Shown here: positions 9,121 to 43,863 of the stretch, piece after piece | How positions within the stretch are numbered: position 1 is the first letter of the stretch | Layout: every line of letters begins with the position of its first letter | Origin: Scyliorhinus canicula | Lineage: Eukaryota | DNA: 64,000 nucleotides | Assembly (NCBI RefSeq): GCF_902713615.1 | Contig: NC_052152.1 | Span: forward strand, 51,559,810 to 51,623,809 | Direction: 5' to 3' | Program-made: the position numbers and the translations under genes | The notes under the pieces: model-generated | Database searches by the model: none | What the model was told of the DNA's origin: nothing | What the model saw: only the letters and a program-made list of their open reading frames with translations

Positions 9121-9658
9121 ATGTTGAAACGGCCTTGTTAAGGCCAATTGAGTTTACCAGTTTTTCAGAAATTCAGTGTGAGGAAATTGTGGTCGATACA
9201 TAATCATGTCAGATGTGACAGTTTGATTGCATAGAGGTTGATTCAGGGTTGAGGAAAGTTACCGATACCGAAAGATACCAAAATAGAGCTGGATGTTGTC
9301 AGAAAAGAAAGCTGACCCACACACCTAGTTGACGTTATTGAGAGGAATCATGTTGATGAGAACCGGGAAATAAGAATAGGTATTTGGCAAACTTCACAGA
9401 TTACCGTAGAGGAACATGAAGAGAAGTCCTTGCTGGAGATATGCAGTCTGGTACGGATGGAATCACAGAAGAGCAGAATCACAAGACAGTTCGGTAACAG
9501 AAGAAGCGTATTGAAAGAGGATGGAGTATGGGCAATGATCCATGTCTGTCAGAAATTATAGTGTCTATTTCTGCCCTTTCCTCAAATGAAAATTAGGTAA
9601 CACGAATGTGTGAGGCATAATTTTGATTATGGTGTATTTACATACCATTCTCTCTTGT

Positions 9659-9756
9659 TTAGTAGAATGTCTCAATGACGATGAAGTAACATATGAGCAG
9701 CACAAACAGAATATAGCGGATGACTGACAGGAGATTGTTCATAACGGTCCCGAATT
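9659..9756 (-). CDS. Transmembrane exon of the VJ-type Ig receptor: (E)FGTVMNNLLSVIRYILFVLLICYFIVIETFY*
   Basis: Acceptor GCTTTTGTTGCAG|AA at 9757/9756 in phase 1, compatible with the V and stalk exons. Hydrophobic helix with a lone Arg. TAA at 9661-9659, then donor AATG|GTATGT at 9646/9645. Confidence 0.65.
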
Positions 9757-10016
9757 CTGCAACAAAAGCATACTGGATAAAATGTAATTCTATAGTTGTA
9801 ATAATGTAGAGTAAATTGGAGACGATTGACAATTTGTACTTAGTCCAGTTTGCAATAACATATTCTATATGAATTGGGAGAGATAACAGGTTCATCACAA
9901 GAGTGCACTCATTATATAAAAATTTTTAATAGCAGATTTTTTTAATAACAGGCATAACAGATCAATGGGCACATATAGACTTCCGATCCTGGCTTCTTCA
10001 GAAATGCGGAATGTAC

Positions 10017-10121
10017 CTTTAATCCAACTGTTTCTTTGCAGCGCTGGATCATTGGGGAAAGGCAAATCGCATCCCATTTTTACAGTACTGGCTATCGCAT
10101 TTTGGTAAGTGTTCACTAACA
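10017..10121 (-). CDS. Candidate stalk/connecting-peptide exon: (V)LVNTYQNAIASTVKMGCDLPFPNDPALQRNSWIK
   Basis: Acceptor TTTTCAG|TG at 10122/10121 and donor AAAG|GTACAT at 10017/10016. 105 bp, phase 1-1, open frame, one Cys, 260-bp intron to the TM exon. Both splice sites are only moderate. Confidence 0.45.
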
Positions 10122-10671
10122 CTGAAAATCTGCGACATTTTAACAGCTTTTCCAGCGTATTAATGTTTGAGCAGCTGAGGGAATAGATGGTGGGCTGGGG
10201 GGAGGGTGGCTGATGTAAGTAAGTACATGGATAGGGTGATAGGTGGGTAGATGGCGGTGTTGCAGGTAGATTGGGAGGTACATGTGTAGGGTGGCAGGTG
10301 GTTAGGAGGGTGAGGTAAGGTCAGGTTGAGGGTGAGGGTGGGGGTGTTGGAGGGGTGGAGCTGGATGGTGGGGTGTGGTCTGGTTCGGCCAAGGATATTG
10401 GGGGTTGGGAGAGTTGGAGGGAGTCAGGTGGTGAGGTTGGATCAGGATAGGTTGGTGGGGAGGGGGGAGGAGGAGGGATGGATGGGGGTTGTTAATCTGA
10501 GATCAGTGTGAGTGATTGACCGGTCAGTTATACAGTTACCCAGGAATTTGATTCGGGATTTTTCTGTTTAACATTTCCTGGGTAACAATCCGGGTAAGTA
10601 ATTCAGAATTGTCCCAAGTCTCTGATTCCAGCTCAAATTTAAAGGGTGGGATTCTCCGTTTCTGAGACTAT

Positions 10672-11305
10672 GGGCTGGAGTCTCCTATTCTGCGGCTATG
10701 TCCAGAGGATCCATCTGGTCTTACGGCCAGAAGGTCAGCGCCGCCCCCGCACAGATTCTGCGCCCAGTGGGGGGCGAGCAGCCACACTGCGTAGGCTTTA
10801 CCTGCAGATAAGGCCGCAGAATGGCCTGGTCCGTGGCCGCGCATTTGCATGGCGGTGGCCTGCAGCGGCCCTGCCGTATAAGATGCCGCCGGATGCGTGC
10901 CGACCCGACCTGCCAAAAACTGCCCCCGTGTAACCCCCATCGCCACCCCCAGACCACTCCCCACCAGTCCCCCCAGAAGCCCACCTGCCAGGAGAGCAGC
11001 TCCACCCCCCGACTGTGACGGCGCTGGACACAGTCCGCAGTCGCCATACGAGGTCCCCGAACGTTGTGAGGTCACGTGTCCCACGCCGTCTGGGACTCGC
11101 CCCATCGGGGGCAGAGCATTGGGGGAGGGCCTCAGGTAATGTCCTGAGGCCGTCCCGATGGCGCACGATGTACTCCTCGAGTACGCTGCTTTTGAGGGGG
11201 CGGAGCATCGGAAAAGCAGCGCCGCCTCTGATTCCAGCGTAAACGTGGATTCTTCGGCTGATCGCCGAACGCAATTTCGCCGTCGGCGATCGGAGAATCC
11301 CGCCC
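10672..11305. mobile_element. Harbinger MITE nested in the left end of element A
   Basis: GGGCTGGAGTCTCC...GGAGAATCCCGCCC, flanked by TAT/TAA. Confidence 0.7.
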
Positions 11306-11496
11306 TAAGTGTTGACACCAATGCAGAATTTGTGGATTTTCACGACAGCAAAACTGGCGCCGCACCTGGACCGATTACACTACTATTAAGAGGCTAGCGT
11401 GGAACACAATCGATTCTAATGAGAAATGCTGTTGACAAGCTGCAGCCACATATATACATTCCACCCCCCACACAACACCATTCCAGCTGACGGTCA

Positions 11497-11684
11497 GGGG
11501 CTGGTTTAGCTCACAAGGCTAAATCGCTGGCTTTTAAAGCAGACCAAGCAGGCCAGCAGCACGGTTCGATTCCTGTACCAGCCTCCCCGGACAGGCGGCG
11601 GAATGTGGCGACTAGGGGCTTTTCACAGTAACTTCATTGAAGCCTACTCGTGACAATAAGCGCTTTTCATTTCATTTCATTTTC
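11497..11684 (+). mobile_element. Short tRNA-derived SINE without V-domain, (TTTCA)n tail
   Basis: GGGGCTGGTTTAGCTCA A-box, GGTTCGATTCC B-box, tail CTTTTCACAGTAACTTCATT...GTGACAATAAG. A second copy lies at 45694-45872. Confidence 0.8.
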
Positions 11685-11687
11685 AAG

Positions 11688-12629
11688 ATGGCAGCCAGGA
11701 GAGCAGCTCCACGCTTCACCAATGCCGAGCTGGACACCCTCCTGGGCAACGTGGAGGGGAGGAAGGTGACCCTTTACCCTGGCCCAGGAAGGACGCTGCC
11801 AGCTGCTGCCATTCGTCATGCCTGGGCGCAGGTGACAGAGATGGTCAGTGCCACCAGTATGCCGAAAGAAACTGCAGAACCTCCTCAGGGAGGCCAAGGT
11901 GACCAGGCATGACTGTGCTCCTGACTCATGTCCCACACAGCCGTCACCCTGCCCCCTCCCAACCCAGAGGACAGACGAACCCCGCCTTGCAAAACATACC
12001 GGCACCTATACCAGCTGCCATGGCCGGGTGCACTGGCCACGGAGGCCACCAGATGCCCACCCCCTGGGCTGCTTGCATCAGTCTGCCGAACACTGTCATC
12101 TTCTGTACCTCCCCCCGCACCCCTTCAGGAGGAGGCTGCGCACAACCGCCGGGAGCATGAGAAGACAAGAGGAGGTCTGCCAGACATTTCGGTAACAGAA
12201 GAAGACTCAATTAGTGCGAGGTGGCGGAGAAGTCTCAGGGGATGGCTCCGCTTGCAATTCGTCCCATGGAGTAGCCCAGGGGCCATCGGGCACCCTGAGG
12301 GAGGAGGAGGTGATGGGGCCCGTGCCGGTGACTCCCACAGGGGAGGTCCCAGAACACCACAGCACCTTGGACCCCCCCCCCCCCCCCCCCATCCTGTCCC
12401 TGGTGCATCAGGTGGACAAGGGCAGCAAATGGGGGCACCATGCCACCTGGGACACCTGAGCAGCAGTCGGCCCATCCAGGCCCGGTCTGCCCAGAAATGC
12501 CCGGCAAAGGGGACCCTTGTCACAGGGCAGGAGTCACAGCAGGTCGCCTCCATTCCTGCTGTATCATCTGGCAAACCACCTAGGCGTAGCGTTAGGGCAC
12601 GTAAGGCCAGAAAGTTAGACACAGGTTAG
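11688..12629 (+). pseudogene. Harbinger A Myb/SANT-like (NAIF1/MSANTD-type) DNA-binding gene, degenerate and spliced
   Basis: MAARRAAPRFTNAELDTLLGNVEGRKVTLYPG...AWAQV aligns with the Myb exons at 29090 and 41662; frameshifted. Confidence 0.75.
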
Positions 12630-13049
12630 ATTATCATGGATGCAGGGCAGTTTAGTTGTAGGGCACAAATCTGTAAATATTTGTTCACATGAAACACCCG
12701 TTACCACTGTTACAACCTGCCTCTGTGCTCTGTCTGATGGGTGTGAGGGGTAGCTGGTCTTGGCTGGTCGGGGAAGTGGAGAATGGGCGAACGTTGTGGG
12801 GGTGGGGAATGGGCGTACACTGTGGTCTGGCCTCCACACCACCCCCCAGCTCCCCCCTCTGACCGTCCCCACCACCGCCACCCCAAGGGATTCGATGGGA
12901 CCGTGTGATGGAATGGAGAACTTGCATACAGGAATCACCTTGGTGGACGGTGGAAAGTGCGACCATGGACAGGAGTCAGATATTGTCAAATGATACGGAG
13001 AACTAGGGCTCATGGCAGAGCAGGTTGTCATCATCCTCCATCCCATGGA

Positions 13050-14167
13050 CCAATGATAGAGGGCGTTGCAGGGGGGAAGAGTGGGGGGAAGTGAGGGTGG
13101 TGTGGGAGTGGGATGCGGTGTCCGTGCCCCTGGCCAGTCACCTCCCTTCAGTTGGTGAACCTGGAACCGATCAGGGTGTCCTGTGCACGCAGGCCCTGGC
13201 GCCCATTTCGTGTGGCCTCCCATGCCTGCCTGGGCCCCATGTCCCGCCCATCCTCCCCCTCTCCCGCATGCTCCTTGTCAGACGAGGCATGGTGTTCATC
13301 CTTCTCCTCCTCCAGCACATCGCCCCTCTGCTGCGCGATGTTGCGGAGGGCGCAGCAGACCGCCACGATGTGGACAACCCTCTCAGCATCATACTGGAAC
13401 ATCCCGATCGGTCCAGGCACCTGAACCCCATCTTCAGGAGGCCGACACATCGCTCAATCACGGACCTGGTCGCTGTATGGGATTCCACGTTGGTCTGTGG
13501 CCTCCAGATAGATGTCACCAGCCACGATCGCAGTGGATAACCCCTGTCACCCAGGAGTCAACCCCCCCAGCCGAGGGAGGGGTGTTGCGTCTCAAACATG
13601 TCAGGAGTCGTCGAACGTGCCAGGATGAAGGAGACGTGCACACTGTCTGGGTGCTGGACACTGACGTGTATGATGTGCATCTGATGGTCATATTTCAGCA
13701 GCACGTTCTATAGTGGAACCCCTTTCGGTTTGTGTACAGCAGCCTGTTATCTGCAGGTGCCCGGTCAGGGATATGCATCCCGTAGATCACCCACTGGATC
13801 CGGGGCATCCCAACGATGGCGGTGAACCCCGCTGCCCGGGAATCCTAGTGGGTCCAGTCCACATTAAAGTGAATGTATTGAGCCACCCGTTCTGGCAGTT
13901 TCTCAAATGACAAGCAGTGCCGGTATACGCGAGGCCTCATGCGGCGCCTCCTTGGCACCTCCTTCTCCTTGGATTGTTGGGTGGCTCACTCTCCATCCTG
14001 CGTGGCTGCCTCCTGTCCCTCTGGGACACACTCTGCTGCTACATGCTCTGCTGCAGCCGTTTCGTCCTCCTCCTCAAGCAGCGCCTGCTCGTGTAGCCGC
14101 AGGGCATCCCCAGGGCAGCGGTGACTAGGAGAAAGGCAACCATTGCTGGTTGAATTCCAATATCCAT
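13050..14167 (-). pseudogene. Harbinger A HARBI1-like DDE transposase, disrupted
   Basis: Remnants HTATRSVIERCVGLLKMGFRCLD and VCCALRNIAQQRGD; frameshifts and deletions. Confidence 0.8.
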
Positions 14168-15829
14168 TGTCTGCAGGGGGTGAAAGGCATGGTGCCTACA
14201 TCCGTGCCCAACCAGGTCCAACAGGCAACATGGTGCCCAGTTGGCACTGTAGGCTCTGCCCCCGCATGTCCCTCTCCCCCCTCCCGCCACCATCCCCGCA
14301 CCGTGGGGGCCTCTGGCACTGGCACCTATCGCTGATGTCAGGGGTACCATCGGCTGGCACTGCCCTCGCCAGGGGTATGCACCGCGGCACTGGTTGGGGC
14401 TACTGTGGGTGTTGCCCTGGATGGACCGCTGGTGGGTGGTGGCCAGGTGAGGGTGGGGGGGGGGGGTGGAAGGGGCGGGTGTGTGGCAGAGGTGCAGGGA
14501 TGGGGGTGCGGGGGTGTGGGCACCGAAAAGGCCGGGGTCATTCTGCAGAACCAGGGGACTTGGTATGTGGTCAGTGGGTTGTGCAGCAAGATGGCCACGG
14601 TAATGGCGGTCCGTGCCTGGCACCGCCCCAGTCCCATGGGGGGTCACCCCAGATACTCGGCCTGTTCCTTGGTTGCCCCCCCACCCCCACCCCGCCCCCA
14701 GCCCTGGCAGGGCATGCTCCCCCATACACCTCAGCCAGCCCGGCCAGTGTCCGATCCGGCAACCCATAGTCGCTCCTCTCCGGGTCCTACCTCCTCTCTC
14801 TTCCTCACCAGCCACCACAAAGGTTTCACGATTTTTAAAAGCACAAGTGAGCCGTGCCATCGGGAACTTGTCCCATCGGAGGAGGAGACTCGCAGTGGCC
14901 GCAGTGAATTCCGGGTCAGGCCCGCTAATGATATGCAAACGGTGTTTACTGTATGGTACGCATTCACACCCCTGTCGAGGTGACCGAGAATTGGGATTTG
15001 GCATCAAATCGGCACCTGCCGCAATTCTGGCGTTGGAACCTAGTCTCTGCCCAATTGCGTTTCGCGATTTTGGTGTCGGTAAAGGAGAATCCCGACCAAA
15101 GATTTTTGCAGAGGGTCCAGGAATTTTAATTTCCCGAGCTATTCTCATAGAGTCAGTGTGTTGGAGCTTCTGAGGTTACCTGACTTCCAAAGCATACCTT
15201 GGGTTTATGTCCAACCTCCAGTGGTCTGGAGACAAGGTGATCTGGGCCAAATATTCCAGGGTGGGACGGGGGGGGGGTGAGAGAGAGAGAGAGAGAGATT
15301 GTTGAATCAGACTGGGCCATAACTTCCAATGGAGTGGTAATTGAATCGGATTGCCTCTGCTGCACCCAAAATACTTACCTGGAAATCCAGGCAACCCTGT
15401 CTCGTATGACCTTCCAATTCAGGCTGGGTGAGATCTGGGCAGTGCAGCCTGTCCCCAGGGCCTAGCGTTGAGGGTTGTGGAGGCGAAGATGAGGTGAGGG
15501 ATGGAGTTGAGGATGGAAGCGTCCGTAGGAGATTGGAATAGGTCAGAGCAATCGTTGCCAAGAAGCTAGAAGTGGTTTTCATTCTTCTGCTTTTTCTGGG
15601 CAACTATTGATGTAACCCAGTCAGAACTATCAGAAGTTTGTGATTTAAATTGAATTCTCAAATGGTTCCCAACGCAGGACAATTGCTCGTTACAAGTTTG
15701 TATTTTCAAGGCAATTGCTGTGTAAACCCTTACCTGGGAACGTCCGGGCCGGCTGGGGGATTTTGGGGGGGCGGGGTGGAGCGGGGGAGAGAGAGAGAGA
15801 GAGTTGTCCCCCAGTGTGCTGGAGCTCAG

Positions 15830-16080
15830 AGGTTCACCCACCGTCTTGGAAACAATTTGCTGGTCATGGAGGTGGCTACCTCGTGTTTTCTCATTGCTGG
15901 AGGGCACCAGGTACTTATCTGCTAATTCCCATCAGTCCATTCCATATTTTAAAGAACATGGTCAGCCTGTTTTTCTCCCTCCTTTGCAGCACTGATTCCC
16001 ATTCCAAATCTTTGATCAAGGATGTGATTCTTGTGTATGCAGATCCATGAAGAATCAGGCAGCACTTCAATCTGATTTAT
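15830..16080 (-). mobile_element. Old non-LTR retrotransposon RT C-terminal remnant
   Basis: Minus-strand translation RITSLIKDLEWESVLQRREKNRLTMFFKI...KTRGSH is typical of LINE RT C-termini. Confidence 0.55.
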
Positions 16081-16539
16081 ACCTCGCCATATTTCACACA
16101 CTACGTAGTCTGGCAGTGAACAAACAAATGTTTGATAAGCAATAAATCTGAGATTTTAGTTCTTCTTTGCCCCTTCCTATCTCTAACATGCTCAATCATC
16201 TTCACGTTTAAAGTTTCCATCTGCCACATAACTTCTGATGAGATATGATAGCAATCTGAAGAGTTAATTCCGATGAGGAAATAAAAACAAAATCAAATAT
16301 AATGCACCTACGTTCATGTGTGTAATTCTTCCGTACAGCAGCTGTAAAAATGAGATTTAAGAAAGATACTATTCAGAAACGTGCTTTCAAAAATAAATAT
16401 TTGATAAGTTTAACAATTACAAGGATTTTGACCCATTGCCGTGGTAACCGCAAGTACATAAATCAGGATCTGCATCTAAAACAAGAAGTGAGTTATCTAC
16501 TCAACAAATACGCAGCAGGTAGCGAGGGAATGGGCGATT

Positions 16540-17700
16540 CTTCACAAGTGGAATTTAACGAAGCTGGTGGAGGAAGCCAGGGAGGATCTCAAGAGGTGGG
16601 ATATGTTGCAATTGAGATTAACGGGGAGGGTACAAGATGTAAAGGTGAACACTCTGCCGAGGTTCCTGTTCATTTTCCAAACCTTCCTCTTTATTCCGAA
16701 GGCCTTCTTTCGGAAACTGGATACAATTATTTTGGACTTCGCATGGGCGCGGAAGGTGCCAAGGGTTAGGAGGACCCTGTTACAGAGGCAGAGGCAGCAG
16801 GGAGGGTTGGCGTTGCCAAACCTGCTTCTTTCTTTTTGGGCGAACGTGGAGAAGGTGAGGCGACGGTTGGAAAGAGAGGGAGTAGAATGGGTTAGGATGG
16901 AGGAGGAATCCTGTAAGGGGTACAGCTTAAGAGCTATGGTGATGGCAGCATTGCCAATGGCGCCCAGCAGGTACTCAGGGACCTGGTGGTGCAGTCCACG
17001 GTGAAGATCTGGAATCAATTTAGGAGGCACCTTAGGATGGCGGGGATGTCGGTGTTAGGGCGGTTGTGTGAGATTCACGGGTTTGAGCCGAGGCGGATGG
17101 ATGGCACATATAGGAGGTGGAGAGAAGTGGGGCTGGTCAAGGTGAGGGATCGGTATCTGGAAGAAGAGTTTGCCAGTATGAAAGAATTGAGGGAGAGGGT
17201 AGAGCTTCCAAGAGGGCGTGAGTTCAGGTACCTGCAGGTAAGGGACTTTGCACAGGTTTGGAAGGAGTACCCCATGTTGCCAAGGTACACCCTGCTGGAG
17301 CGACTGTTGCTTCCGGATGTGTAAGGGGAGGGTAGAATTGGAGATATATACAGGTGGCTGGGAGAGGAGGGAGGTGAGTGGATGGTGAATTAAGGAAAAA
17401 TGGGAAGGGGAGCTGAGAGGGGAGATAAATGAGAGTATGGAGTGAGGCACTACAAAGGGTAAATGTGACCTCCTCGTGCTCAAGGGTGAGTCTGATACGG
17501 TTTAAGGTCGTGCAGATTGCACGTATGACTTGGGCAAGAATGAGTGGTTTCTTCCAGGGGGTGGCAGATGAGTGTGAGAGGTGTGGGTGGGGAGCACCGA
17601 ATTGTGTGCCCATGTTCTGGGCCCTCTAATTGCCCAGCGACAAATCTTATTGGAGTGGTGGTCAGCAACGCCACCGGGGGTAGCGGCCTGGCTCATTAGA
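16540..17700 (+). mobile_element. Degenerate L1 ORF2 3' fragment
   Basis: VKVNTLPRFLFIFQ, GGLALPNL and CERCG...MFW motifs. Confidence 0.8.
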
Positions 17701-18965
17701 ACTATTTTGCATGTCATTGCCAGGTGGGATGCACAATTTACAAGCCAGCTGGGAAATGCTCCGCACCAATCATACCCCCCCCCCCCCCCTGCACACTCAG
17801 CTGAGAGTCTCGCTGGCGTGAATTGGGGCAAGTATTGAGGAACATGGTTGTGGTAGTTTGCAGTCTGAGGGGTGGCAAGGTGGTTAGTACCCTCCCAACA
17901 AGGGTGTCGTGGGGATCCTTCCTGGGAGATGGGGAGTCAAGAGGGCTTGTGCTGGGCTGGAGGGGCTCAGGTCGGGGCTCTTCCCTGGGATGGGGCTCCT
18001 TTGGCTGCTCTCACCATCTTCAGCCTTTAAACCCATTAACAATCACTCAGAATGTAAAAACTACCTTAATTCAGTGAAAATGTTCTTGTCTGTAGCCTTA
18101 AGCCATTTAAACAGTCAGTGTGTAACGGTTATCCCATAATAGTGAAAATATTTTCATTTGTACTCCAATATCATTTATACAGTCACTCAGTATTTCATAA
18201 ATGCACATCCCTCTTAATAAAATGAAGGTATTCTTATCTGTACCCCTAAACCCTTTAAAAACTCTTGTCAGTATGCCAAGTTTAAAGGACTGTGAGATAA
18301 AGGTGAAAGTTATGTCTTTAAAATGGCGGAAACCTTTGAAGTGATTTTTACAGTCAATTTAATTGCCTTTAGAAGTACAGAAGTCATGTGCCTATGGCTA
18401 AGACACTGAATGCTTTGAACTAGATTGTTTACATTGAAATTCACACTCCATTGCCTGCGGAAAACATTGTGATTGACAGCTCGCTGGACATGCAATGGGT
18501 AGAATCAGATTGTTTATTTTTATAACTCTGCAGGCATCCATTAAGTCAGGGTAGTAGCTGTTTCTCTAACTGCAATTTGTTTTACGAGTCTGCCTATTTG
18601 TTCTCCAGTGCTTCCTAGAATGTGAGGGACAGCCCACTCAGTTGTTCTTTCCTTGAGAAGGCTGCAGATGGGCAGAGCAGCCAACAGAGCTCCATGCCAG
18701 AGAAAACACCAACATGAGCCCCTCCAGCCCAGTACGACACCCCCTGACCCCCACCTCCCAGGAAGGATGCCCCTTGACACCCCAATGGCTATTGTTGGGA
18801 AGGTACTTACCACCTTGCCACCACTCAGACTGCAAGGTGCCAGTTAAGAGGAGGGTGGGGCGAGATGGGGTAATGGGGGGGAGGGGGGGGGGGCGGAATG
18901 GGAAACCTGGGGGGGGGGGGCTAAAGGGAAGTTCTGAAGTTAACTCGTGCCCGGAGTTAACTGGA

Positions 18966-19290
18966 GGGAAGACACGATGGCACAGTGGTTAGCACTGCTG
19001 CCTCACAGCTCCAGAGACCCGGGTTCAATTTCTACCTCAGGTGACTGTGTGGAGATTGCGCTTGTCTACGTAGGTTTCTCCGGGTGCTTCGGTTTTCTCC
19101 CATAGTCCAAAGATGTGCAGTTTAGGTGGATGGCCGTGTTCAATAGCCCCTTAATATCCAGAAGGTTAGAGTTACGTGGGATTACTGAGTTGGGGGGATA
19201 GGGTGGGGGCCTGACCTGAGGTAGGGTAACCTTTCAGAGGGTCAGTGCAGACTCGATGGGCCAAATGTTCTCCTTCTTCACTGTAATGTT
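18966..19290 (+). mobile_element. HE1-like V-SINE
   Basis: GGCACAGTGGTTAGCACTGCTGCCTCACAG head, V-domain and CTGTAA tail. Confidence 0.75.
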
Positions 19291-19313
19291 TAAAATTTAA
19301 AAATCTTTCAAGT

Positions 19314-20055
19314 TGTGGTAACCTAGCAAGGCCGACATTCAGGCCCGATTAAAATTGGGTATTTTAAATTAAAGAATCCGCTTGATTAAAATTGGGTATT
19401 TTAAATTAAAGAATTGGATACTTTAAAACAAGCTACAGTCACTCCAGCACAGCCTCATGGGGATTTGGACTGGTCAAGTTCGAATACACTTTGAGGTCAG
19501 ACAGGCTGCCAAGACATGGACCTGCTCAGTCAATTGACCATCAAGAGATAATCGATCCGATTGAAATGCACGGGCCTATTGTTACGAACTCAGGCTGGGC
19601 TAGACTCTCGGGCGCCTGGAGTTCCAGCCGTTACATTATTTGGCAAGGGGTACGTTCAAACATGGCCATGGGAGATGGACACCTGCGGGTGGCCCAGGTA
19701 ACCTGTCAATAGAGCATCAATCGGATCATTGGACACTAAAAGTCCTTTTCGATACCCCATTGGCCAAAGGCCGCAGGAAGTGGGAAAAGGGCGCAAAGCC
19801 AGTAGGGAATAAAAACAGTCACTCCCGACCCCTCAGGAGCAAAGACTTGACATGCGTTACCAGATTTGAGCAGATTTGACCAGACCAGACCAAACTTTGA
19901 CCAGAAGGAAGGGAGGAAGAGACTGCCAACGTGAACCACCTTAGTGAAAATGGGCCAGAGGAATTCCAGCAATCAGATCCATAGCCTACCAAGCCATCTT
20001 TATGCATAGTATACACTGAACTTGGGTACCTCTAGTATTTTGAGGGTAATATAAG
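19314..20055 (+). mobile_element. Possible solo LTR
   Basis: Starts TGTGGTAACC; internal 31-bp tandem duplication (about 19347-19415) and AATAAA near 19808. No TSD was found and the 3' end abuts an L1 poly(A) tail. Confidence 0.3.
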
Positions 20056-20257
20056 ATTTTTTTTGTAAAATAATTTTATTCAAACATTTTCCATTTTACA
20101 CATAACACAACAACACATCACCCCCAATTACAAACCCCTCCATAGAAAAAAAGAACAAAAGAACAAATCACCCTAACTCTCCCGCCCAGCGAGTGACCAG
20201 GTGACCGGCTCTTTGAAGTACAAGATAAATGGCTACCTGCCTTTGGTGGAACCCTTA

Positions 20258-20945
20258 GGGCAAGATTCTCCGCAAATGCGGAGAGTCGTAAAGGCTGCCA
20301 TGAAACCGGCCGTGTTTCACAGCAGCCTTCACGCCCGTTCCCGGGACCCGATTCTCCCCCCCCCCCCCATCGGGGCTAGGAGCGGGACCCCTGGAATCAC
20401 GGCGTTGCGGCCTAAACGACCGTCGTTAAGGCCGCGCGCATGCGCGGTGTCGTCATCACGCCATTGACGGAACCCGAGCATGCGCGGTTCCGCATTTCTC
20501 CACTGCCGTCCAAGATGTGGTGGCTTGATCTTGTTGGGCGGCGGAGGGGAAATAGTGCGTCCCTTTTGGACGCAGGCCCGACGATCAGTTGGCACCGATC
20601 GCGGGCCTGACCCCTCCCGAGCACAATGGTGGTGCTCGCGCCCCAAACGGGCTTCTGGATGCCCCAAAAGAGGGCATCCAGCGCCCGTTTTTACGACGGC
20701 AGCAAGCAGGTGTGTTTGCTGCCGTGAATAAACGGGTGTAAAGGCCCGGCCGCTCAGCCCATTGGCCGCGGAACACGAGTTAACTTCAGAACTTCCCTTT
20801 AGCCCCCCACCCCAGGTTTCCCATTCCGACCCCCATTTGTGACGTGGGTCGGGCAAGGGGGGGAGAATAGCGGGAGGGCTTGAAAAATGTCGGGAGGCCC
20901 TCCCGCTATTCTCCCAACCGGCGTGGGCAGCGGAGAATCGCACCC
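20258..20945. mobile_element. Harbinger MITE, 688 bp
   Basis: TIRs GGGCAAGATTCTCCG / CGGAGAATCGCACCC with a perfect TTA TSD (20255-20257, 20946-20948). Confidence 0.8.
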
Positions 20946-21115
20946 TTAATTTCTCACCTCACTGTGTACTTGACTTTTTCAAGGTCCAGATGATGCCTCA
21001 GCCATACTGACCTTCACCCACCTTCGAGCAATCAGCGAGGTGAAGGCCAGGACATTGTCCCCCGCTCCCGTCTGCAGCTCCAGCAAGTCTGACACCCCAA
21101 ATATGGCAACCAGGG

Positions 21116-21460
21116 TGTTGTGTTCTATGGCTCTCCTGATCATGAAGACACGCATAGAACATGTGTGTTTAACTATAACAAGTATTTATTATTACACACG
21201 TGGACAGGTAACCAACAAACTTATGTACAGACAATTATATAAGTTATTGGAGAGCTACAGTGAGATTTGACTGTCCTGTTGTCTGTCCTGCTCCCAATTG
21301 CCTTCGTCTCGTCAGTCACCTGACATATATATAGCTCCATGTGTGTCTGGCTCCACTTACTGGTAGGAGGTCATAACTGTCATTACATGTATTGATGATC
21401 AGCTTTATACATTGGTACTGTTAAAGTCATTGGTACAATTATATCCAGCTATATTAGACA
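21116..21460 (-). mobile_element. Probable solo LTR
   Basis: TGTTG...GACA ends; TATATATA and minus-strand AATAAA in LTR order. No TSD; the right end abuts a SINE fragment. Confidence 0.4.
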
Positions 21461-22568: not shown

Positions 22569-22606
<38 letters not shown>

Positions 22607-22632
22607 GTTGCTGCTGCCACGACCCCGAACGT

Positions 22633-25600
22633 CTATCTCTGATCTAAAAAGTCAAGGAAAGGTTGCCACCGCCTGGAGAATCCCTGTACCGACCCTCTCA
22701 GGGCAAATTTGATCCTTTCTAGCTGAATATAGCTAGCCATATCGTTAATCCAAGTTTCAACGCTTGGAGGCCTCGCGTCCTTCCATTGAATTAATATCCT
22801 TCGTCGAGCCACTAGGGACGCAAAGGCCAGAATTCCGGCCTCCCTAGCCTCCTGTACCCCCGGTTCTACCCCGACCCCAAAGATCGCAAGCCCCCATCCT
22901 GGTTTGACCCTGGACCCCACCACCTTCGACACCGTCCATGCCACCCCCTTCCAGAACCCTTCCAGCACCGGACATGCCCAGAACATATGCACATGGTTCG
23001 CTGGGCTTCCCAGACATCTGACACACCTGTCCTCACCCCCAAAGAACCGGCTCATCCTTGTCCCCGTCATGTGAGCTCTATGCAGCACCTTAAATTGAAT
23101 GAGGCTCAGCCTCGCACACGAGGAGGAAGAATTGACCTTCTCCAGTGCATCCGCCCACGTCCCGTCTTCTATCTGCTCTCCCAGCTCCCCTTCCCACTTG
23201 GCTTTCAGCTCCTCCCCTGATGCTTCTTCCGCCTCCTGCATTATCTTGTAGATGTCTGATATCTTCCCCCCTCCGACCCAGACCCCCGAGAGCACCCTAT
23301 CACTCGCCCCCTTACTGGGGAGCAGGGGGAACCCCTCCACCTGCCGTCTAGCAAATGCCTTCACTTGTAAATATCTGAACATGTTTCCCGGGGGGAGCTC
23401 AAACTTCTCCTCCAGCCCTCCCAGGCTCGCAAACCACCCCTCTATAAACAGGTCCTTCAGCTGCCGTATGCCCACCCTGTACCAGCTCTGAAATCCCCCG
23501 TCGATGTTCCCCGGGATGAATCTATGGTTCCCTCTTATTGGCGCCGCCAACAGACCTCCCATTTCCCCCCTGTGTCGCCTCCACTGCCCCCATATCTTGA
23601 GGGTGGCCGCCACCACCGGGCTCGTGGTGTACCTCGTGGGGGGGAGCGGCCATGGTGCCGTTACTAGGGCCCCCAGGCTTGTGTTGCCACAGGACGCCCT
23701 CTCCATTCGTTTCCAAGCTGCCCCCTCCCCTTCCATCATCCACTTGCGCACCATTGACACATTTGCCGCCCAGTAATACCCCGAGAGATTGGGTAGTGCC
23801 AGCCCTCCACTGTCCCTACTCCACTCCAAAAAGACCCTCCTCACCCTTGGGGTGCCATGCGCCCACACGTAGCTCATGATGCTACTCGTCACCTTTTTGA
23901 AGAAGGCCCTAGGGAGGAAGATGGGCAAGCACTGAAATAAAAACAAGAACCTTGGGAGGACCGTCATTTTGATTGACTGCACCCTCCCCGCCAGCGACAA
24001 CGGTGCCATGTCCCACCTCTTAAATTCCTCCTCCATCTGTTCCACCAGCCTGGAAAAGTTCAACTTGTGGAGGGTCCCCCAGTTCCTTGCCACCTGCACC
24101 CCTAAGTACCTAAAGCTCTTTCCTGCTCGCTTGAAGGGGAGTCTCCCAATACCCTCTCCCTGGTCCCCCGGGTGTATCACAAAAACCTCGCTTTTGCCCA
24201 AATTTAGTTTGTACCCCGAAAAGTCCCCAAACTCTGCTAATAGTTCCATTATCTCCGGCATTCCCCCTTCTGGGTCTGCCACGTACAGCAGTAGATCATC
24301 CGCATACAGCGATACTCGATGTTCCTCCCCTCCCCTAGTCAGTCCTCTCCACCCCCCTGAACCCCTCAGTGCCATCGCCAACGGTTCAATCGCCAGTGCG
24401 AAAAGTAGGGGGGATAGGGGACATCCCTGCCTGGTCCCTCGGTGGAGCCCGAAATACTCCGACCTCCTCCCGTTTGTCACTACACTCGCCGTCGGGGCCG
24501 AGTAGAGCAACTTCACCCACTTAATAAACCCTTCCCCAAACCCAAACCGTTCCAACGTCTCCCACAGGTACTCCCACTCCACCCTATCGAATGCCTTCTC
24601 CGCGTCCAGCGCTACCACTATCTCAGCCTCCCCCTCCACTGCCGGCATCATAATTACATTCAGCAATCTCCGCACGTTCGTGTTGATCTGCCGCCCCTTC
24701 ACGAACCCCGTCTGGTCCTCATGGATTACCCCTGGCACACAATCCTCTATTCTAGCTGCCAGGATCTTTGCCAGCAACTTGGCATCCACGTTCAGAAGCG
24801 AGATAGGCCTGTAGGACCCGCACTGCACGGGGTCTTTATCCCGCTTCAATATCAGGGAGATCAGAGCCTGCGACATTGTCGGGGGCAGAACCCCCCCCTC
24901 TCGCGCCTCATTAAAGGCTCGTACCAGTACCGGTCCCACCAAGTCCACATTTTTCTTATAGAATTCCACCGGGAACCCATCTGGCCCCGGCGCCTTCCCC
25001 GCTTGCATCTGACCTATTCCCTTGACTAGCTCCTCTAGCCCTATTGGCGCCCCCAGCCCTTCTACCAGCCCCTCCTGGACCCTTGGGAACCTCAATTTGT
25101 TTAGGAAGTCCTCCATTCCCCCTCTCCTCGTCGGCGGCTCAGACCGATACAACTCCTTGTAAAAATCCCTAAAGACCCCATTCACTTCTTGCCCCTTCTG
25201 CACTACCTTCCCGCCCCTCTTCTTCACTCCCCCAATCTCCCTAGCCGCATCTCGTTTGCGAAGCTGGTGTGCCAGCATCCTGCTCGCCTTTTCCCCATAC
25301 TCATAGACCGCGCCCTGTGCCCTTCTCCACTGCGTCTCTGCCTTCCTGGTGGTCAGCAGGTCGAACTTGACCTGCAGGCTGCGCCGTTCTCCCAGCAGCC
25401 CCTCCTCTGGTGCCTCCGCATATCTCCTATCCACTTCCAATAGCTCCCCCACCAGCCTCTCCCTCTCCTGCCTCTCCTTTCTTTCTCTGTGTGCCCTTAT
25501 GGAGATCAGCTCTCCCCTGATCACTGCCTTCAGGGCCTCCCAGACCATCCCCACCTGCACCTCACCCGTGTCATTCAAGTCCAGATAGCTCTCAATGCTC

Positions 25601-37089: not shown

Positions 37090-39879
37090 TCTGAGGTGCA
37101 TTCGTTTTAATGCGAGAAGTGTAGCAGTTAAGGCAGATGAAATTAGGGCTTGGATTAGTACCTAGGAATATGATGTTATTGGTTTTACTGAGACTTGGTT
37201 GAGGGAAGGGCAAGATTGGCAACTAAATATCCCAGGGTACAAATGCTTCAAGAGGGATAGAGAGGGAGGTAAAAGGGGTGGAGGAGTTGCATTACTGGTC
37301 AGAGATGATTTCACAGCTGTGATTAAGGAGGGCACTATGGAGGATTCGCGCACTGAGGCAATATGAGTAGAGTTAAGAAATAGGAAGGGTGCAGTAACAT
37401 TGTTGGGACCTTACTACAGGCCTCCCAAAAGTGAGCATGAAGTAGAGGTACAAATATGTAGACAGATTATAGAAAAATGTAGGAGCAATAGGGTGGTCGT
37501 AATGGGAGATTTTAATGTCCCCAACATTGAATGGGACTCATGTAGCGTTGGAGGCGTAAATGGAGCAGAGTTTGTAAGGAGCATCCAGGAGGGTTTTCTA
37601 GAGCAGTATGTAAATAGTCCAACTCAGGAGGGGGCCATACTGGACCTGGTATTGGGGAATGATCCCGGCCAGGTGGTTGAAATTTCAGCCAGTGATTACT
37701 TTGGGACTAGCGATCACAATTCCGTAAGTTTTAGAATACTCATGGACAAAGACGAGAGTGGTCCTAAAGGAAGAGTGCTAAATCGGGGAAAGGCCAAGTA
37801 TAACAAAATTCGGCAGGAGCTGGGGAATGTGGATTTGGAGCAGTTATTTAAGGGTAAATCCACATTTGAAATGTGGGAGTCTTTTAAGGAAAGGTTAATT
37901 AGAGTGCAGGACAGACATGTCCCTGTGAAAATGAAGAATAGAAATGGCAAGATTAGGGAACCATGGATGACGGGTGGAATTGTGAGACTAGCTAAGATGA
38001 AAAAGGAAGCATACATAAGATCTAGGCGACTTAAAACTGATGAAGCTTTGGAGAAATATCAGGAAAGTAGGACAAATCTCAAACGCACAATAAAGAGGGC
38101 TAAAAGGGGTCATGAAATATCTTTGGCTCACAGGGTTAAGGAAAATCCCAAAGCCTTTTATTCGTACATAAGGAGCAAGGGGGTACCTAGAGAAAGGATT
38201 GACTCACTCAAAGACAAAAGAGGGAATTTATGCATGGAGTCAGAGGAAATGGGTGAAATACTTAATGAGTACTTTGCATCGGTATTCACCAAGGAGAGGG
38301 ACATGACGGATGTTGAGGTTCGGGATGGATGTTTAAATACTCTTGGTCAAGTCGGCATAAGGAAGGAGGAAGTTTTGATTATTTGAAAAGGAATTAAGGT
38401 GGACAAGTCCCCAGGTCCGGATCGGATCCGGAAGCGAGGGTTGAAATAGCTGGGGCCTTAACAGATAACTTTGCAGCATCCTTGAGCACGTGTGAGGTCC
38501 CGGAGGACTGGAGAATTGCTACATTGTCCCTTTGTTTAAGAAGGGTAGCAGGGATAATCCAGGGAATTATAGACCTGTGAGCTTGATGTCAGTGGTAGGC
38601 ACACTGTTGGAGACGATACTGAGGGATAGGCTCTATTCATTTGGAAGAAAATAGACATATCAGTGATAGGCAGCATGGTTTTGTGCAGGGAAGGTCATGT
38701 CTTACAAATCTAATAGAATTCTTTGAGGAAGTGACAAAGTTAATTGATGAGGGAAGGGCTGTAGATGTCATATACATGGACTTCAGTAAGGCGTTTGATA
38801 AAATTTCCCATGGCATGTTGATGGAAAAAGTGAAGTCACATGGGGTTCAGGGTGTACAAGCTAGATGGATAAAGGACTGGCTAGGCAACAGGAGACAGAG
38901 AGTAGTGGTGGAAGGGAGTGTCTCAAAATGGAGAAAGGTGACTAGTGGTGTTCCACAGGGATCCGTGCTCGAACCACTGTTGTTTGTGATATACATAAAT
39001 GATCTGGACGAAGCTATAGGTGGTCTGACTGGCAAATTTGCAGATGATACTAAGATTGGTGGAGTTGCAGATAGCGAGGGGGACTGTCAGAGAATACAGC
39101 AAAATATAGATAGATTGGAGAGTTGGGCAGAGAAATGGCAGATGGAGTTCAATCCAGGCAAATGCGAGGTGATGCATTTTGGAAGATCCAATTCAAGAGT
39201 GGACTATAAGGTCAATGGAAGAGTCCTGGGGAAAATTGATGTACAGAGAGATCTGGGAGTTCAGGTCCATTGTACCCTGAAGGTGGCAATGCAGGTCGAT
39301 AGAGTGGTCAAGAAGGCATACAGAATGCTTGCCTTCATTGGACGGGGTATTGAGTACAAGAGTCGGCATGTCATGTTACAGTTGTATAGGACTTTGGTTA
39401 GGTCACATTTGGAATACTGTGTGCAGTTCTGGTCGCCACATTACCAGAAGGATGTGGATGCTTTAGAGAGGGTGCAGAGGAGGTTCACCAGGATGTTGCC
39501 TGGTATGGAGGGTGCTAGCTGTGAAGAAAGGTTGAGTAGATTAGGATTGTTTTTGTTGGAAAGACGGAGGTTGAGGGGAGACCTGATTGAGGTCTACAAA
39601 ATTATGAGAGGTATGGACAGGGTGGATAGCAACAAGCTTTTTCCAAGAGTGGGGGTGTCAATTACAAGTGGTCACGATTTCAAGGTGAGAGGGGGAAAGT
39701 TTAAGGGAGATGTGCATGGAAAGTTTTTTACGCAGAGGGTGGTGGGTGCCTGGAATGCTTTACCAGCGGAGGTGGTAGAGGCGGGCATGATAGCATCATT
39801 TAAGATGCATTTAGACAGATATATGAACGGCCGGGGAACAGAGGGAAGTAGATCCTTGGAAAATAGGCGACAGGTTTAG
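37090..39879 (+). pseudogene. CR1 ORF2 (APE and RT) in several pieces
   Basis: VMGDFN, SDHNSV, QHGFVQGRSCLTNL, GVPQGSVL, FADDTK, QRDLGV and RRLRGDLIEVYKI motifs. Confidence 0.9.
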
Positions 39880-41409
39880 ATAAAGGATCTGGATCGGCGC
39901 AGGCTGGGAGAGCCGAAGGGCTTGTTCCTGTGCTGTAATTTTCTTTGTTCAGTGGATTCTCATATGTAGTTGGTCCTCATATGTAGTTGGACAACTGGCA
40001 CTGGGGTGCTCCCATTGCTAGTTGCAGCCTTCCTTGTACTCAGGTTCCTACCTGTCCAATTATACTTGGCAGGAATTCCCCTGCTCTTATGCCCCTACAA
40101 TTCCAGGCAGGTGACCATCTATTGCACAGACTCCTATCTGTGCCACAGGAAAGACACGTGCTTTCCAAAGGGTGAGACTGCTTAATGCCATTCACTGTTT
40201 TATGGGGTCCAGATAACTCCCTGGGTGGAAATGACTGGCCCCATTGTGTACCTGTCTCCCTTTACCAGGCCTGCTGGCATATGCAGTTCATTTATCCTCA
40301 GAAAAATCTCCCCATTAATGAAATCTTAATTAGCTTAAATATTCTGATGACGCAATCAGGTCAATGAAGGTAATGCAGTTGATGTGAAGTACATGAACTT
40401 CCAAAGGACATTTCATAGAGTGCCATATAGCAGGCTTGTCTGCAACATTCCAGCCAATGGAATAAACAGGGGGCATGGAGATGAAATTTGCTGGGTGACA
40501 GGACACTGTAGTGTTTCATCGTTTGAAAGAGACAATATGAAATAAAGAATTTTGAAAGAGCAGGAGTAGAGCAAATTGAGTGAATGTGCACACAAATCAT
40601 TGAAATTTGCAGAGCTGGTTCAGGAAGTGGTTCGACAACAGTTGGGATCCTAGATGTTATAAATAGTAGGTGTGTGTCAGGCAAAAAGAAGATTATGACA
40701 TCACCTTTATAAGACACTGGTTCAACCTTAACTGGTATATTGGCCGAGGTTTTCTGCTCGCGTTCTTTATGGGCACATTTGGAGACAGAAGGGGAAAATC
40801 TCACGAGGCCCAAGTTTCTTCTTACATTGGCAGGAAATCCCACCGCGACCGCACCCCCCCCCCCCCCCCCCCCCCCCAACCCCCGCGCCCATCCGCCAGT
40901 CAGGTAACAGGAATCCTGATGTTCAACATCAGGGACACCATTATAACAAATCTGAATATCATTTTCAGGCCTCTACACCTGAACCATCCCCCCACCCCGT
41001 AATATAATCCATTGACATCGGCATGAGGGCAGACTGGTGTGACTTACAACTGGTCTCTCATGGTGTGCACCTGGTGGGAAGACACTCCAGAAGAGCTCAG
41101 GTGAATGCATCACTGGGATGGGGTGGGGGGAACAGAGTGGCCAGGGCCTGTGTTTTCGGGGGGGGGGGGGGGGGGGGGGGGGGGGGTCATTTTAACGTTT
41201 ACGCACCAGGGTGCCTTTATAAATCATGCTCTGATCTTTAAATTCTAATTTGCTGGCAGGGTGGTCTCTGTAAGCATGAAGTTGTGGGGCCCACCCCTTG
41301 GGTATATTTGTTTCCATGTTCCTCACAATATGGCGGAAGTGGTTTCATACACTACTTTTCCCATCCACTGTTGCACTGTGCCAAAATGCAGGTAAAATTC
41401 CACCCAATA

Positions 41410-42690
41410 AGCGCGATTCTCCGGAAAACTATCCACGTTTTGTAACAAGCGGGAATTGCCGCATTTACCCGGCGTTCTGCCCGGCGAGCTGGCACCACTA
41501 TTCAACATTAATTGGTCCACTTGACGAGGCCTCATGGGCTTCCCGCCCCGAATGCTGGCTCGGCAGCTGATTCGCCGTGACCGTGCTCGCCAGCACCCAC
41601 TAACAACGTCAAGCAGCACTTAAATAGCACTTGCTCAGCCAACCCCAGCCAGCTCACAACAATGGCATCGAGGAGACTTACCCCAAGATTCACTGATGCT
41701 GACATGGAGAGGCTCCTGGACGCGGCGAAGGCCAGGAGGAATGTCCTGTTCCCCCGAGGGTCCCGGAGGATGAGCCACAAGGCAGTCAGTGCTGCCTGGG
41801 ACGAGGTGGACGCAGCAGTCAGCTTGGATAGTGTGACCAGGAGGACAGGCCTCCAGTGTCGGAATGTCAACGACCTACACCGGGAAGCACGGGTGAGTAG
41901 ACACCAATGTCCCACCTCCCAACACCCCCAAGGGAGCATCCCCCCAGGCGACCCCCAATCCTCCCTCCATCCCCCTCCCTCTTCAGCACTCCCTCCACCC
42001 ACCCCTTCAACCCTCCCTCCACCCCAACCCTCCCTACAGCCCCCCCCCCCCCCCCACAACTGTGAACCACGTGTGTGGCTAATGATTGCTCTCTGTCTCC
42101 TCAGGAAAAGCTCTCCCATAATCAGCAGGAGAGGGCCCAGAATGCGGTGAGGTGCCGGACTGGAGAATCCTCACCTCCTTCGAGGAGTGGGCCCTGGAGG
42201 TGACTGGTGTGGCTGAAGACAGGGCGGTCACCCCTGCGGAGGCTGGCGGACGCCGCAGAGGTGAGGAACCACCATGCCCCACCGGAGGACCTGTCAAACG
42301 TGAGTTGTTCTAGCCTTACTGACCCATCCCTCCCACTGACCACATGTCCATTGTCCTGCATGTCTTCCAGCAAACGGCGCGGCCCATCCTGGGCGGCACC
42401 CTCTCCTGAGTCCGAGAACACCTCAGCGGAGAGCTCCGAGGATGCAACTGTTATAGTCGCAGCACAGCTGTCATTCCCACCCTCCAACAGCGCAGATACA
42501 CACACCTCGGAGGGAAATGTTAGTGGTCAGGCTCTTCGGGCACAATCTGGTGAGCATCACACTTCTGATGATGTAGATCTGGTGGAGGGAGGAACCCCCA
42601 GGCAAGACAGCATTCGGAGGTCTGCTGGATCCCTGCTCCCAATTGGGTCCCAGCCTGATGCTGCGCCTCTGGAAGAGTTTTCCGGAGCTG
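41410..42690 (+). mobile_element. Truncated Harbinger C (left end and spliced Myb/SANT gene only)
   Basis: GCGCGATTCTCC TIR remnant. Exon 41662-41892 MASRRLTPRFTDADMERLL...AWDEV...QCR, donor CGG|GTGAGT, acceptor TCTCCTCAG| at 42104. Cut by a SINE. Confidence 0.75.
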
Positions 42691-42694
42691 GCAT

Positions 42695-42995
42695 GGTAGC
42701 AAAGTGGTGAGCACTGTTGTTTCATAGCGCCAGGGTCCCAGGTTCGATTCCCGGCTTAGGTCACTGTCTGAGCGGAGTCTGCACATTCTTCCCATGTCTG
42801 TATGGGTTGCCTCCGGGTGCTCCGGTTCCTCCCACAAGTCCCGAAAGACATGCTGTTAGGTGAATTAGTCATTCTGAATTTTCCCTTAGTGTACCCGAAC
42901 AGGCGCGGGAGAGAAGCGACTAGGTGATTTGCACAGTAACGTCATTGCAGTGTTAATGTAAGCCTACTTGTGACAATACTAAAGATTATTATTAT
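42695..42995 (+). mobile_element. V-SINE variant with GTGACAATA-(ATT)n tail
   Basis: Head, V-domain and tail as at 5399-5694. Confidence 0.8.
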
Positions 42996-43124
42996 TGTAG
43001 ACATTGCATCCCAGGCCATTCGTAAGTGAAAATTGCAATCGTGGTCCGACAACATGCATCTCCCCAATGGCTAATTTAATGCCTAACTCAAACAACAGAA
43101 TTTCATCGAGGTATTTTCCCTTAC

Positions 43125-43466
43125 CTTTAACAATTAGGTGAGTCCCAGCGCCTGTGGTCTTACTTGAAAGCGAACCTTCATGAGTAACAATATTACAATA
43201 ATACACCCCTGTGTCAGAAACGAGAAGATCTTTAATTCTCAGAACACTGTGGAAATGAGTTGTGTTGACACTGGACACAGTGATACGATCATCTTCCAGC
43301 TCGGTACTGATATTTCTCACATGCGTTTCACCAAAGATCATTTTGACGGAATGCCAATAGAAACTGCCTTCATTCTCTAAAATGCAGTTGAAATGGGCAG
43401 CCTGGCCTTCCTGCAGCCTGAGTATGGGGGGAGATTGCAGCACCTCCGATCCAGTAGCAGCAGCAC
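43125..43466 (-). CDS. Ig V-set exon with germline-joined J-like motif; NKp30/NCR3-like receptor
   Basis: Acceptor GTAATAG|GT at 43467/43466 and donor AAAG|GTAAGG at 43125/43124; 342 bp, phase 1-1. Q-SP..EG...C, W, L-x-I-x-D-L-x-x-x-D-T-G-V-Y-Y-C and TGAGTHLIV. Confidence 0.9.
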
Positions 43467-43547
43467 CTATTACAATACAACCTCATTAATGTGTTGAAGA
43501 TAGTTAAACATTTCAGTGTAAATTGTAGTAATTGCCTCCATATTATT

Positions 43548-43762
43548 TATTTTTAAAAAATAAATTTAGAGTACCCAATTAATTTTTTCCAATTAAGGGG
43601 CAATTTAGCATGGCCAATCCACCTACTCTGCACATCTTTGGGTTGTGTGGGCGAAACCCGCAAACACGGGGAGAATGTGCAAACTCCTCACAGACAGTGA
43701 CCCAGAGCCGGGATCGAACCTGGAACCTCGGCGCCGTGAGGCAACAGGGCCACCGTGCTGCC
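43548..43762 (-). mobile_element. Short V-SINE with A-rich tail in intron 1 of the Ig gene
   Basis: GGGCAGCACGGTGGC head; tail GGGTACTCTAAATTTATTTTTTAAAAA. Confidence 0.8.
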
Positions 43763-43829
43763 CAACATGCCTCCATATTAAGAATGAATAATTATATACA
43801 TTACCTATATCTAGAATCAGTATACTTAC

Positions 43830-43863
43830 AGACTGAAAACAAGAGCAATGCAGCAATCATCAT
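43830..43863 (-). CDS. Leader exon of the Ig receptor (MMIAALLLFSV)
   Basis: ATG at 43863 and donor GTCT|GTAAGT at 43830/43829 in phase 1. Spliced to the V exon it gives the signal peptide MMIAALLLFSVCAAATGS-EVLQSP. Confidence 0.85.

Follow-up and report, generated by a model that had tools for sequence, protein, structure and literature searches.

A stretch of 64,000 nucleotides (nt) from the genome of Scyliorhinus canicula (contig NC_052152.1, positions 51,559,810 to 51,623,809; hereafter the window) carries on its minus strand a gene of about 37 kb that is real, spliced and transcribed. The gene consists of five exons, namely a leader exon, a VJ-type variable (V) exon, an optional 30-nt stalk exon, a transmembrane (TM) exon and an untranslated last exon. 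Its product is a type I membrane protein of 157 or 167 amino acids (aa) with a single antigen-receptor-like immunoglobulin (Ig) V domain. From the combined evidence we consider it probable that the gene encodes a lineage-specific, non-rearranging VJ receptor of elasmobranchs, which would be NKp30-like in how it works without being NKp30.

The exon layout is as follows (positions are those of the window). The leader exon (43830..43863, 34 nt) begins with ATG ATG at 43863 and holds 11 codons plus one base before the donor T/gtaagt. Its signal peptide MMIAALLLFSVC pairs in an alignment with MMLATLLLFAAC of the Mustelus asterias relative P0001, and it is because of this homology that we accept the leader exon, where RNA contigs are absent. 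Intron 1 (43467..43829, 363 nt) separates it from the V exon (43125..43466), which is in phase 1 at both ends, lies between the acceptor aatag/ and the donor AAAG/gtaagg, and contributes 113 aa from its in-frame codons (43464-43126). The optional stalk exon (16312..16341, 30 nt; acceptor ttttacag/, donor /gtaggt) codes for AAVRKNYTHE plus the first base of a Gln codon. It is followed by the TM exon (9646..9756, 111 nt; acceptor ttgttgcag/), which reads (E/Q)FGTVMNNLLSVIRYILFVLLICYFIVIETFY and has its stop codon at 9661-9659, with 13 nt of untranslated region before the donor AATG/gtatgt at 9646/9645. The last exon (about 6742 to 7157; acceptor ctttcag/) is wholly untranslated and contains an AATAAA signal at 6775-6770. 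Every splice junction is GT-AG and phase-compatible, and in the window copy the open frame is unbroken across all exons, with consensus splice sites.

Four RNA runs were aligned to the V region and four to the TM region: X14, X18 and X13 to both, X19 to the V region only and X20 to the TM region only. Contigs of X14, X13 and X18 end exactly at the V donor at 43125 and then continue into other sequence; the intron past this donor has no coverage in the aligned runs. Around the anchor, coverage is limited to 9646-9756 (four runs; full length in X14, X18 and X20). One X14 contig (870 nt, depth 24) links both exons directly, with its positions 417-527 corresponding to 9646-9756 and its positions 528-870 to 43125-43468, and past the TM acceptor the X14 loose end reads as the 3′ end of the V exon in reverse complement. 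In this run V is joined straight to TM over 33,368 nt with the stalk exon skipped, giving the 157-aa form. The contigs of X18, X20 and X13 carry a separate 30-nt stretch beside the TM acceptor, so that three runs hold the in-frame V-stalk-TM form. This stretch is placed once in the window (16341-16312) with 0 mismatches, where none would be expected by chance, and a 231-nt X18 contig runs from TM (positions 1-36) through the 30-nt exon (37-66) into V (67-231). At the other end of the anchor, the loose ends of X14, X18 and X20 before 9646 are the reverse complement of the sequence from 7157. Positions 1-416 of the X14 contig are left over for the last exon, and from this length we infer that its 3′ end lies at about 6742.

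An earlier note, made from the letters of this DNA alone, had placed the leader (43863-43830), the V exon (43466-43125) and the start of the TM exon (9756) correctly and in compatible phases with AG/GT sites, and had proposed that transcripts join V to TM across 33 kb; the RNA bears this out, both directly and by way of the 30-nt exon. Its 105-nt stalk exon (10017..10121, minus strand) had to be given up. This segment has zero depth in all four RNA runs, although RNA does cover the TM exon, which lies 260 nt from it, and it has no counterpart in P0001. Of the two products proposed, the 157-aa protein is thus retained as an RNA-supported form, and the 192-aa protein is replaced by one of 167 aa in which the 30-nt exon is used. 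Words from the locus are present in few RNA runs and stand at about 0.00 in 12 other RNA runs of the species, which suggests that expression of the gene is restricted.

The V and J parts are joined in the germline. The V exon holds both canonical Cys residues, the Trp, a D-x-G-x-Y-Y-C motif and the J-like strand T-G-A-G-T-H-L-I-V-K, and RNA contigs match the genome colinearly over the third complementarity-determining region (CDR3) and the J region (YYC...G-A-G-T). No heptamer of a recombination signal sequence (RSS) was found at the CDR3 junction and no nonamer in the scanned interval 43000-43600, in agreement with the earlier description of a non-rearranging gene. The same holds for the lack of a constant-domain exon that this description included: the RNA runs from V to the 30-nt exon or to TM, and tblastn found no second V, C1 or other Ig exon in the window. 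A perfect RSS-like heptamer, CACAGTG, does occur at 43245-43251 within framework region 3 of the V exon, with no nonamer beside it. It looks like a chance occurrence, because an RNA variant (H72Y) destroys it.

The V domain matches the Pfam V-set family above the curated cut-off (E 2e-8), and an AlphaFold2 model built from a 19-row alignment has a mean predicted local distance difference test score (pLDDT) of 90.2 and the full V strand set. We are confident that this modelled fold is a V-set fold. As for its affinities, a phmmer search of the PDB with the single sequence gave T-cell receptor (TCR) alpha V domains as best matches (E 1.6e-6) and left NKp30 outside the best 60. A profile of three shark V domains again found TCR alpha V best (E 1.8e-9, 40.7 bits), and NKp30 (3NOI, 9FWW, 3PV6) appeared around rank 56 with a full-length alignment (E 1.6e-5 to 2e-5, 27.9 bits). 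Foldseek against the Swiss-Prot models returned TCR alpha/beta V, CD8 beta, Ig kappa and CD79b (E 4.5e-9 to 1.3e-7), the first match being a mouse TCR alpha V. Against the PDB, Foldseek gave generic antigen-receptor V matches, shark VNAR among them, and VIA-align gave Z scores of 15-16 to Ig VL, CD79b, VNAR and TCR delta V. The margins in these structure searches are small between TCR V on the one side and Ig, VNAR and CD8 beta on the other. NCR3 was not among the top 30 of Foldseek against Swiss-Prot, nor among the top 50 of either Foldseek or VIA-align against the PDB, and a protein atlas returned generic V-set clusters only. The specific likeness to NKp30 that the earlier note had drawn is therefore not supported, with TCR alpha V about 13 bits ahead of NKp30 and NCR3 missing from the structural top lists. 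Judged by sequence and structure comparison, the V domain is antigen-receptor-like, and NKp30 is a detectable relative of it, not a special one. Frog VJ-C1 proteins (P0087, P0019 and P0056), which carry a T-G-N-G-T-R-L-L-V strand, were considered as a bridge to NKp30. They were dropped because P0087 finds no NKp30 in the PDB, its best matches being CEACAM, VNAR and light chains.

When 1.84 billion cluster representatives were searched exhaustively with HMMER, two close relatives came up, both from sharks. The first, P0001, is a 171-aa protein of Mustelus asterias (XP_078088791, 'uncharacterized protein LOC144506486'; E 1.3e-42), which is identical to the window V domain at 80/114 positions (70%). 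It is built from a leader, a V domain, a short stalk VAARKNQNYEEPM and an anchor ending in NNLQSVVRYILFVLLMCYFILVETFY; the stalk residues AAVRKNYTHE align with VAARKNQNYE of the Mustelus stalk. Since P0001 is of equal build, it lends independent support to the V-stalk-TM gene model. The second, P0003, comes from Chiloscyllium plagiosum and is named 'T-cell surface glycoprotein CD8 beta chain-like'; its V domain is 55% identical (E 9.4e-28). In both relatives CDR1 is 5-6 residues longer than in the window, and the short Cys-Trp loop remarked on from the DNA alone is thus a real feature of the S. canicula protein. The remaining HMMER matches are much weaker and comprise TCR alpha V segments, shark multi-V proteins (P0005 and P0017 among the next-best matches), SIRP-like proteins and frog V-C1 proteins. 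Word-indexed searches with the V domain, with P0001 and with the P0001 stalk/TM returned nothing beyond P0001, and none of them brought up the window's own product. A curious entry stood second among the V-domain matches: P0002, a 7432-aa Ig-domain protein assigned to the archaeon Methanolapillus millepedarum, which is odd for an archaeon (E 1.4e-33, 31% identity over residues 12-74).

The hydrophobic span of the membrane anchor has an Arg in the outer third, within LLSVIRYILF, and a Glu at the inner end. The Arg is the single basic residue of the span, and there is no Lys five residues after it. The stop codon lies four codons past the span, leaving no cytoplasmic tail. The stalk between V domain and membrane contains no Cys; use of the optional exon lengthens it from about a dozen to about two dozen residues. 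The TM core reads NNLLSVIRYILFVLLICYFIVIETFY here and NNLQSVVRYILFVLLMCYFILVETFY in Mustelus P0001; 22/32 residues of the TM exon are identical between the two (21/26 from NNL to the end), and the Arg, the Cys, the Glu and the ...ETFY C-terminus are all kept. The charged, tail-less anchor that had been read from the DNA thus recurs in Mustelus, and in S. canicula the exon behind it is untranslated. When the 47-aa stalk/TM of P0001 was compared with the PDB, no match was obtained at E up to 10, even though full TCR-CD3 complexes are deposited there, and its words occurred in no other protein of a word-indexed collection of 5.8 billion.

These features suggest how the receptor may work. The elements of the general class of adaptor-dependent activating receptors of the Ig superfamily, that is, an Ig ectodomain, a charged TM segment and no signalling motif of its own, are all present. 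As the protein has no cytoplasmic tail, it would signal only via a partner chain. We propose that the V domain binds a ligand and that the outer-third Arg of the span forms a pair with the Asp in the TM segment of an ITAM adaptor (ITAM, immunoreceptor tyrosine-based activation motif), of the CD3zeta/FcRgamma type. It is in this way that NKp30 and NKp46, by their TM Arg, engage the Asp of CD3zeta/FcRgamma (PMC6514059). Given the absent tail and a conserved Arg as in NKp30/NKp46, the most likely role is that of an adaptor-dependent activating recognition receptor on some leukocyte subset. We found no description of this family of V domain, short stalk and Arg-containing TM in the literature, and the databases name its relatives only automatically.

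The two halves of the protein differ in their variability. Between the reference and the RNA, the V exon has seven substitutions (at 43171, 43251, 43257, 43303, 43366, 43377 and 43410), four of which are nonsynonymous (E19K, E30Q, H70N and H72Y); two of the variants were found in three runs, one of them labelled as a second organism. The 111-nt TM exon does not differ from the window in any run. The V domain is more variable than the anchor, between species as well as among individuals, as one would expect if the signalling module were fixed and the recognition surface changed.

Several observations weigh against the interpretation as a working elasmobranch VJ receptor. At 43384-43385, in the codon of Cys23, the X14 contig has a frameshift and a TAA in place of TGC, the joint result of a substitution and a 1-nt deletion, and the X14 transcript is therefore unable to make a V domain. 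No other contig reaches over the V exon's 5′ half, and the stalk-less form has no other basis than this one. The X18 and X13 contigs share two or three of the X14 substitutions and stop short of the Cys23 codon. The X14 lesion may stem from a null allele, from a paralogue or from an error in the contig. An origin of the contig from a processed retrocopy seems unlikely, given that it does not differ from the window in the TM exon and that X18 carries two of the X14 V-exon variants. The RNA runs bear the label 'RNA?' and their tissues are coded, and in the runs aligned to the V region no RNA contig covers the leader exon. On the side of the relatives, the conservation of the Arg is a matter of two species only, and the C-terminus of the P0003 model looks like intron read-through, so that the TM is not represented in it.

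The genomic surroundings of the Mustelus gene, which spans 7.4 kb, were also considered. Upstream lies a 571-aa RING/B-box/filamin protein and downstream a 242-aa Ig V/C2 protein. We take the RING/B-box/filamin set to be the domain set of TRIM45, which would make this neighbour TRIM45-like. The suggestion in the earlier note that the gene stands outside an MHC (major histocompatibility complex) context is strengthened by it. NCR3, by comparison, has been described as an MHC-linked VJ gene in sharks (PMC12227049), which makes the present gene an unlikely orthologue of it. In humans the genes stand in the order PTGFRN-CD101-TTF2-TRIM45-VTCN1 (PMC11565109).

The design of the protein, a single one-exon VJ domain on a short stalk with a TM Arg, raises the question of whether it is shark NKp30 (NCR3) itself or a recent NCR3 paralogue, which would bind a B7H6-type ligand and signal through CD3zeta/FcRgamma. 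The J-like strand T-G-A-G-T, without the Phe/Trp of antigen-receptor J segments, agrees with this; the strand given for NKp30 in the earlier note lacks them as well. NKp30 is moreover one of about four non-antigen-receptor molecules in the best 60 PDB sequences of the family profile, aligned over its full length at E 1.6e-5, although it is outranked by MXRA8 (duck, mouse) and by partial matches to DSCAM and VEGFR1. The affinity of the V domain, however, lies some 13 bits closer to TCR alpha V, NCR3 is missing from the three structural top lists given above, and there is no exon for a cytoplasmic tail. The names given by NCBI to the relatives are 'uncharacterized' and 'CD8 beta chain-like', not NCR3-like, and the orthologue's neighbour is TRIM45-like, whereas shark NCR3 is MHC-linked (PMC12227049). 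Membership of NCR3 fails on V-domain affinity and on the tail, and probably on synteny too, and we regard this identity as quite unlikely. The same V-domain matches could point to a descendant of a non-rearranging TCR-like chain that has no C domain, retains a TRAC-type 3′ end and assembles with CD3-type modules or with a neighbouring VJ-C1-TM chain instead of working alone. TCR alpha V heads the single-sequence search (E 1.6e-6), the profile search (E 1.8e-9) and the Foldseek list, and the stop codon falls inside the TM exon with the next exon wholly untranslated. TRAC is laid out likewise, with its stop in the TM exon and an untranslated exon after it. Against such a descent stand the absence of any C1 exon or remnant in the window, a stalk without Cys, the missing Lys five residues after the Arg, an orthologous 47-aa stalk/TM that matches no PDB chain (E up to 10) and no other protein in the 5.8-billion collection, and V-domain E-values that are close across TCR, Ig, VNAR and CD8 beta. 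We hold this explanation to be improbable, if deserving of some weight. A more specific version, in which a surviving TCR alpha-type V relative with a lost C domain and a TRAC-like 3′ end sits by TRIM45 in the counterpart of human 1p13 (CD101-TTF2-TRIM45-VTCN1), is a speculative idea to which we give little credence.

The observations on X14 also bear on whether the gene is a decaying, lineage-specific one that is transcribed with little or no function in S. canicula. In its deepest RNA contig the stop/frameshift hits the first canonical Cys and the stalk exon is left out, CDR1 falls 5-6 residues short of that in the other two sharks, and transposons swell the gene to 37 kb against 7.4 kb in Mustelus. 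Yet the frame of the window copy is intact and its splice sites are consensus, the TM exon shows no difference between runs and is well kept in Mustelus, the in-frame V-stalk-TM form is present in three runs, and X14 would be accounted for by one null allele or by an error in the contig. Decay is accordingly a doubtful explanation, of low probability. Least of all do we expect a CD8 beta-type co-receptor chain, for which the automatic name of P0003 and six entries in the Foldseek Swiss-Prot best 30 (E 1.4e-8 to 5.2e-8) would speak. These Foldseek values do not set CD8 beta apart from Ig kappa or TCR V, and CD8 beta is not in the best 60 PDB sequences by profile. The protein has no long hinge and no hinge Cys, the stalk exon adding 0 or 10 residues, and its TM is charged (Arg) and followed by no tail, which makes this assignment very improbable.

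The interpretation that we favour, a lineage-specific VJ receptor with an adaptor-binding anchor, can be placed among known systems. With NKp30/NCR3 the gene shares a one-exon, non-rearranging VJ IgV domain, a short stalk and the TM Arg. Beyond the nearer relation of its V domain to TCR alpha V, by about 13 bits, it differs in its 3′ end: NKp30 takes a tail, with alternative tails, from its last coding exon, whereas the shark gene has none and its last exon is untranslated. Its Mustelus orthologue lies by a TRIM45-like gene and not by MHC genes, the chromosomal surroundings of the S. canicula gene being judged from this orthologue.

When compared with TCR alpha (TRAV-TRAJ-TRAC), there are similarities at both ends of the protein. 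TCR alpha V gives the best sequence and Foldseek matches and shares the G-x-G-T-x-L-x-V strand, and both have a basic TM residue, essentially no tail, and a stop in the TM exon followed by an untranslated exon. However, V and J are fused in the germline of the shark with no RSS at the junction, whereas TCR V and J segments are separate and joined somatically. The shark protein lacks a constant domain and an interchain or hinge Cys, has one basic TM residue where TCR alpha has Arg and Lys, and its TM has no PDB match.

The activating teleost NITRs, NKp44 and the TREM family resemble the shark protein in having an IgV ectodomain, a charged TM, no signalling motif of their own and a dependence on ITAM adaptors, which is predicted here. 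No specific sequence relationship to any of them came to light, and none of our searches singled them out. Most receptors of this type use Lys with DAP12, unlike the shark protein with its Arg in the outer third of the span. Germline-joined, antigen-receptor-like V exons are also known in elasmobranchs from UrIg and UrIg2 (PMC12227049). Both of these are V-C1-C2-C3 proteins, and UrIg is secreted only and made in the liver, whereas the gene described here has one V, no C domain, an Arg-containing TM and no tail.

The introns contain transposons, as the earlier note had said, namely two sets of open reading frames of LINE-type (long interspersed element) endonuclease and reverse transcriptase plus short interspersed elements (SINEs). 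The LINE-type element in the large intron (22633-26845, minus strand) has a 1185-aa frame with endonuclease and reverse transcriptase (RVT_1 E 3.6e-40) and is possibly a young copy. A second such element (35977-39879, plus strand) is broken up into three frames and, besides endonuclease and reverse transcriptase, includes a GDSL-esterase-like part. SINE copies at 43550-43760 in intron 1 and at 42916-42995 reach word depths between 10^5 and 10^6 throughout the RNA runs, and the intron-1 copy finds thousands of contigs at 90-99% likeness per RNA run. Outside the gene, a minisatellite at 55444-56417 consists of about 65 copies of the 15-nt unit TGACGCCGGAGTGGG (92% matching) and is open in several frames, one of them of 403 codons.

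No living group whose immunity is built on antibodies and TCRs is older than the sharks. To a class that is already known, this gene adds a compact, expressed VJ receptor that does not rearrange, is specific to its lineage and bears a charge in its anchor, and that is a member neither of NCR3 nor of UrIg nor of a multi-V family. Its anchor is known in a large protein collection only from the Mustelus protein, and the charge within it gives a clear, testable prediction on adaptor use. The 33-kb intron and the 30-nt exon show a compact receptor gene stretched thin in a transposon-rich shark genome. Single-exon VJ genes are sought as relatives of the gene that was split by the RAG transposon (PMC12227049). 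If the present gene is truly a relative of TCR alpha V, it would be another relic of the pre-RAG receptor set, one that lies outside the MHC and the Ig/TCR complex. Should the Ig V/C2 neighbour in Mustelus prove to be B7-H4, receptor and ligand might even form a linked pair, analogous to NKp30-B7H6. With a TRIM45-like neighbour and a possible B7-family gene, the locus offers a second site for examining whether B7-type ligands stay linked to VJ receptors.

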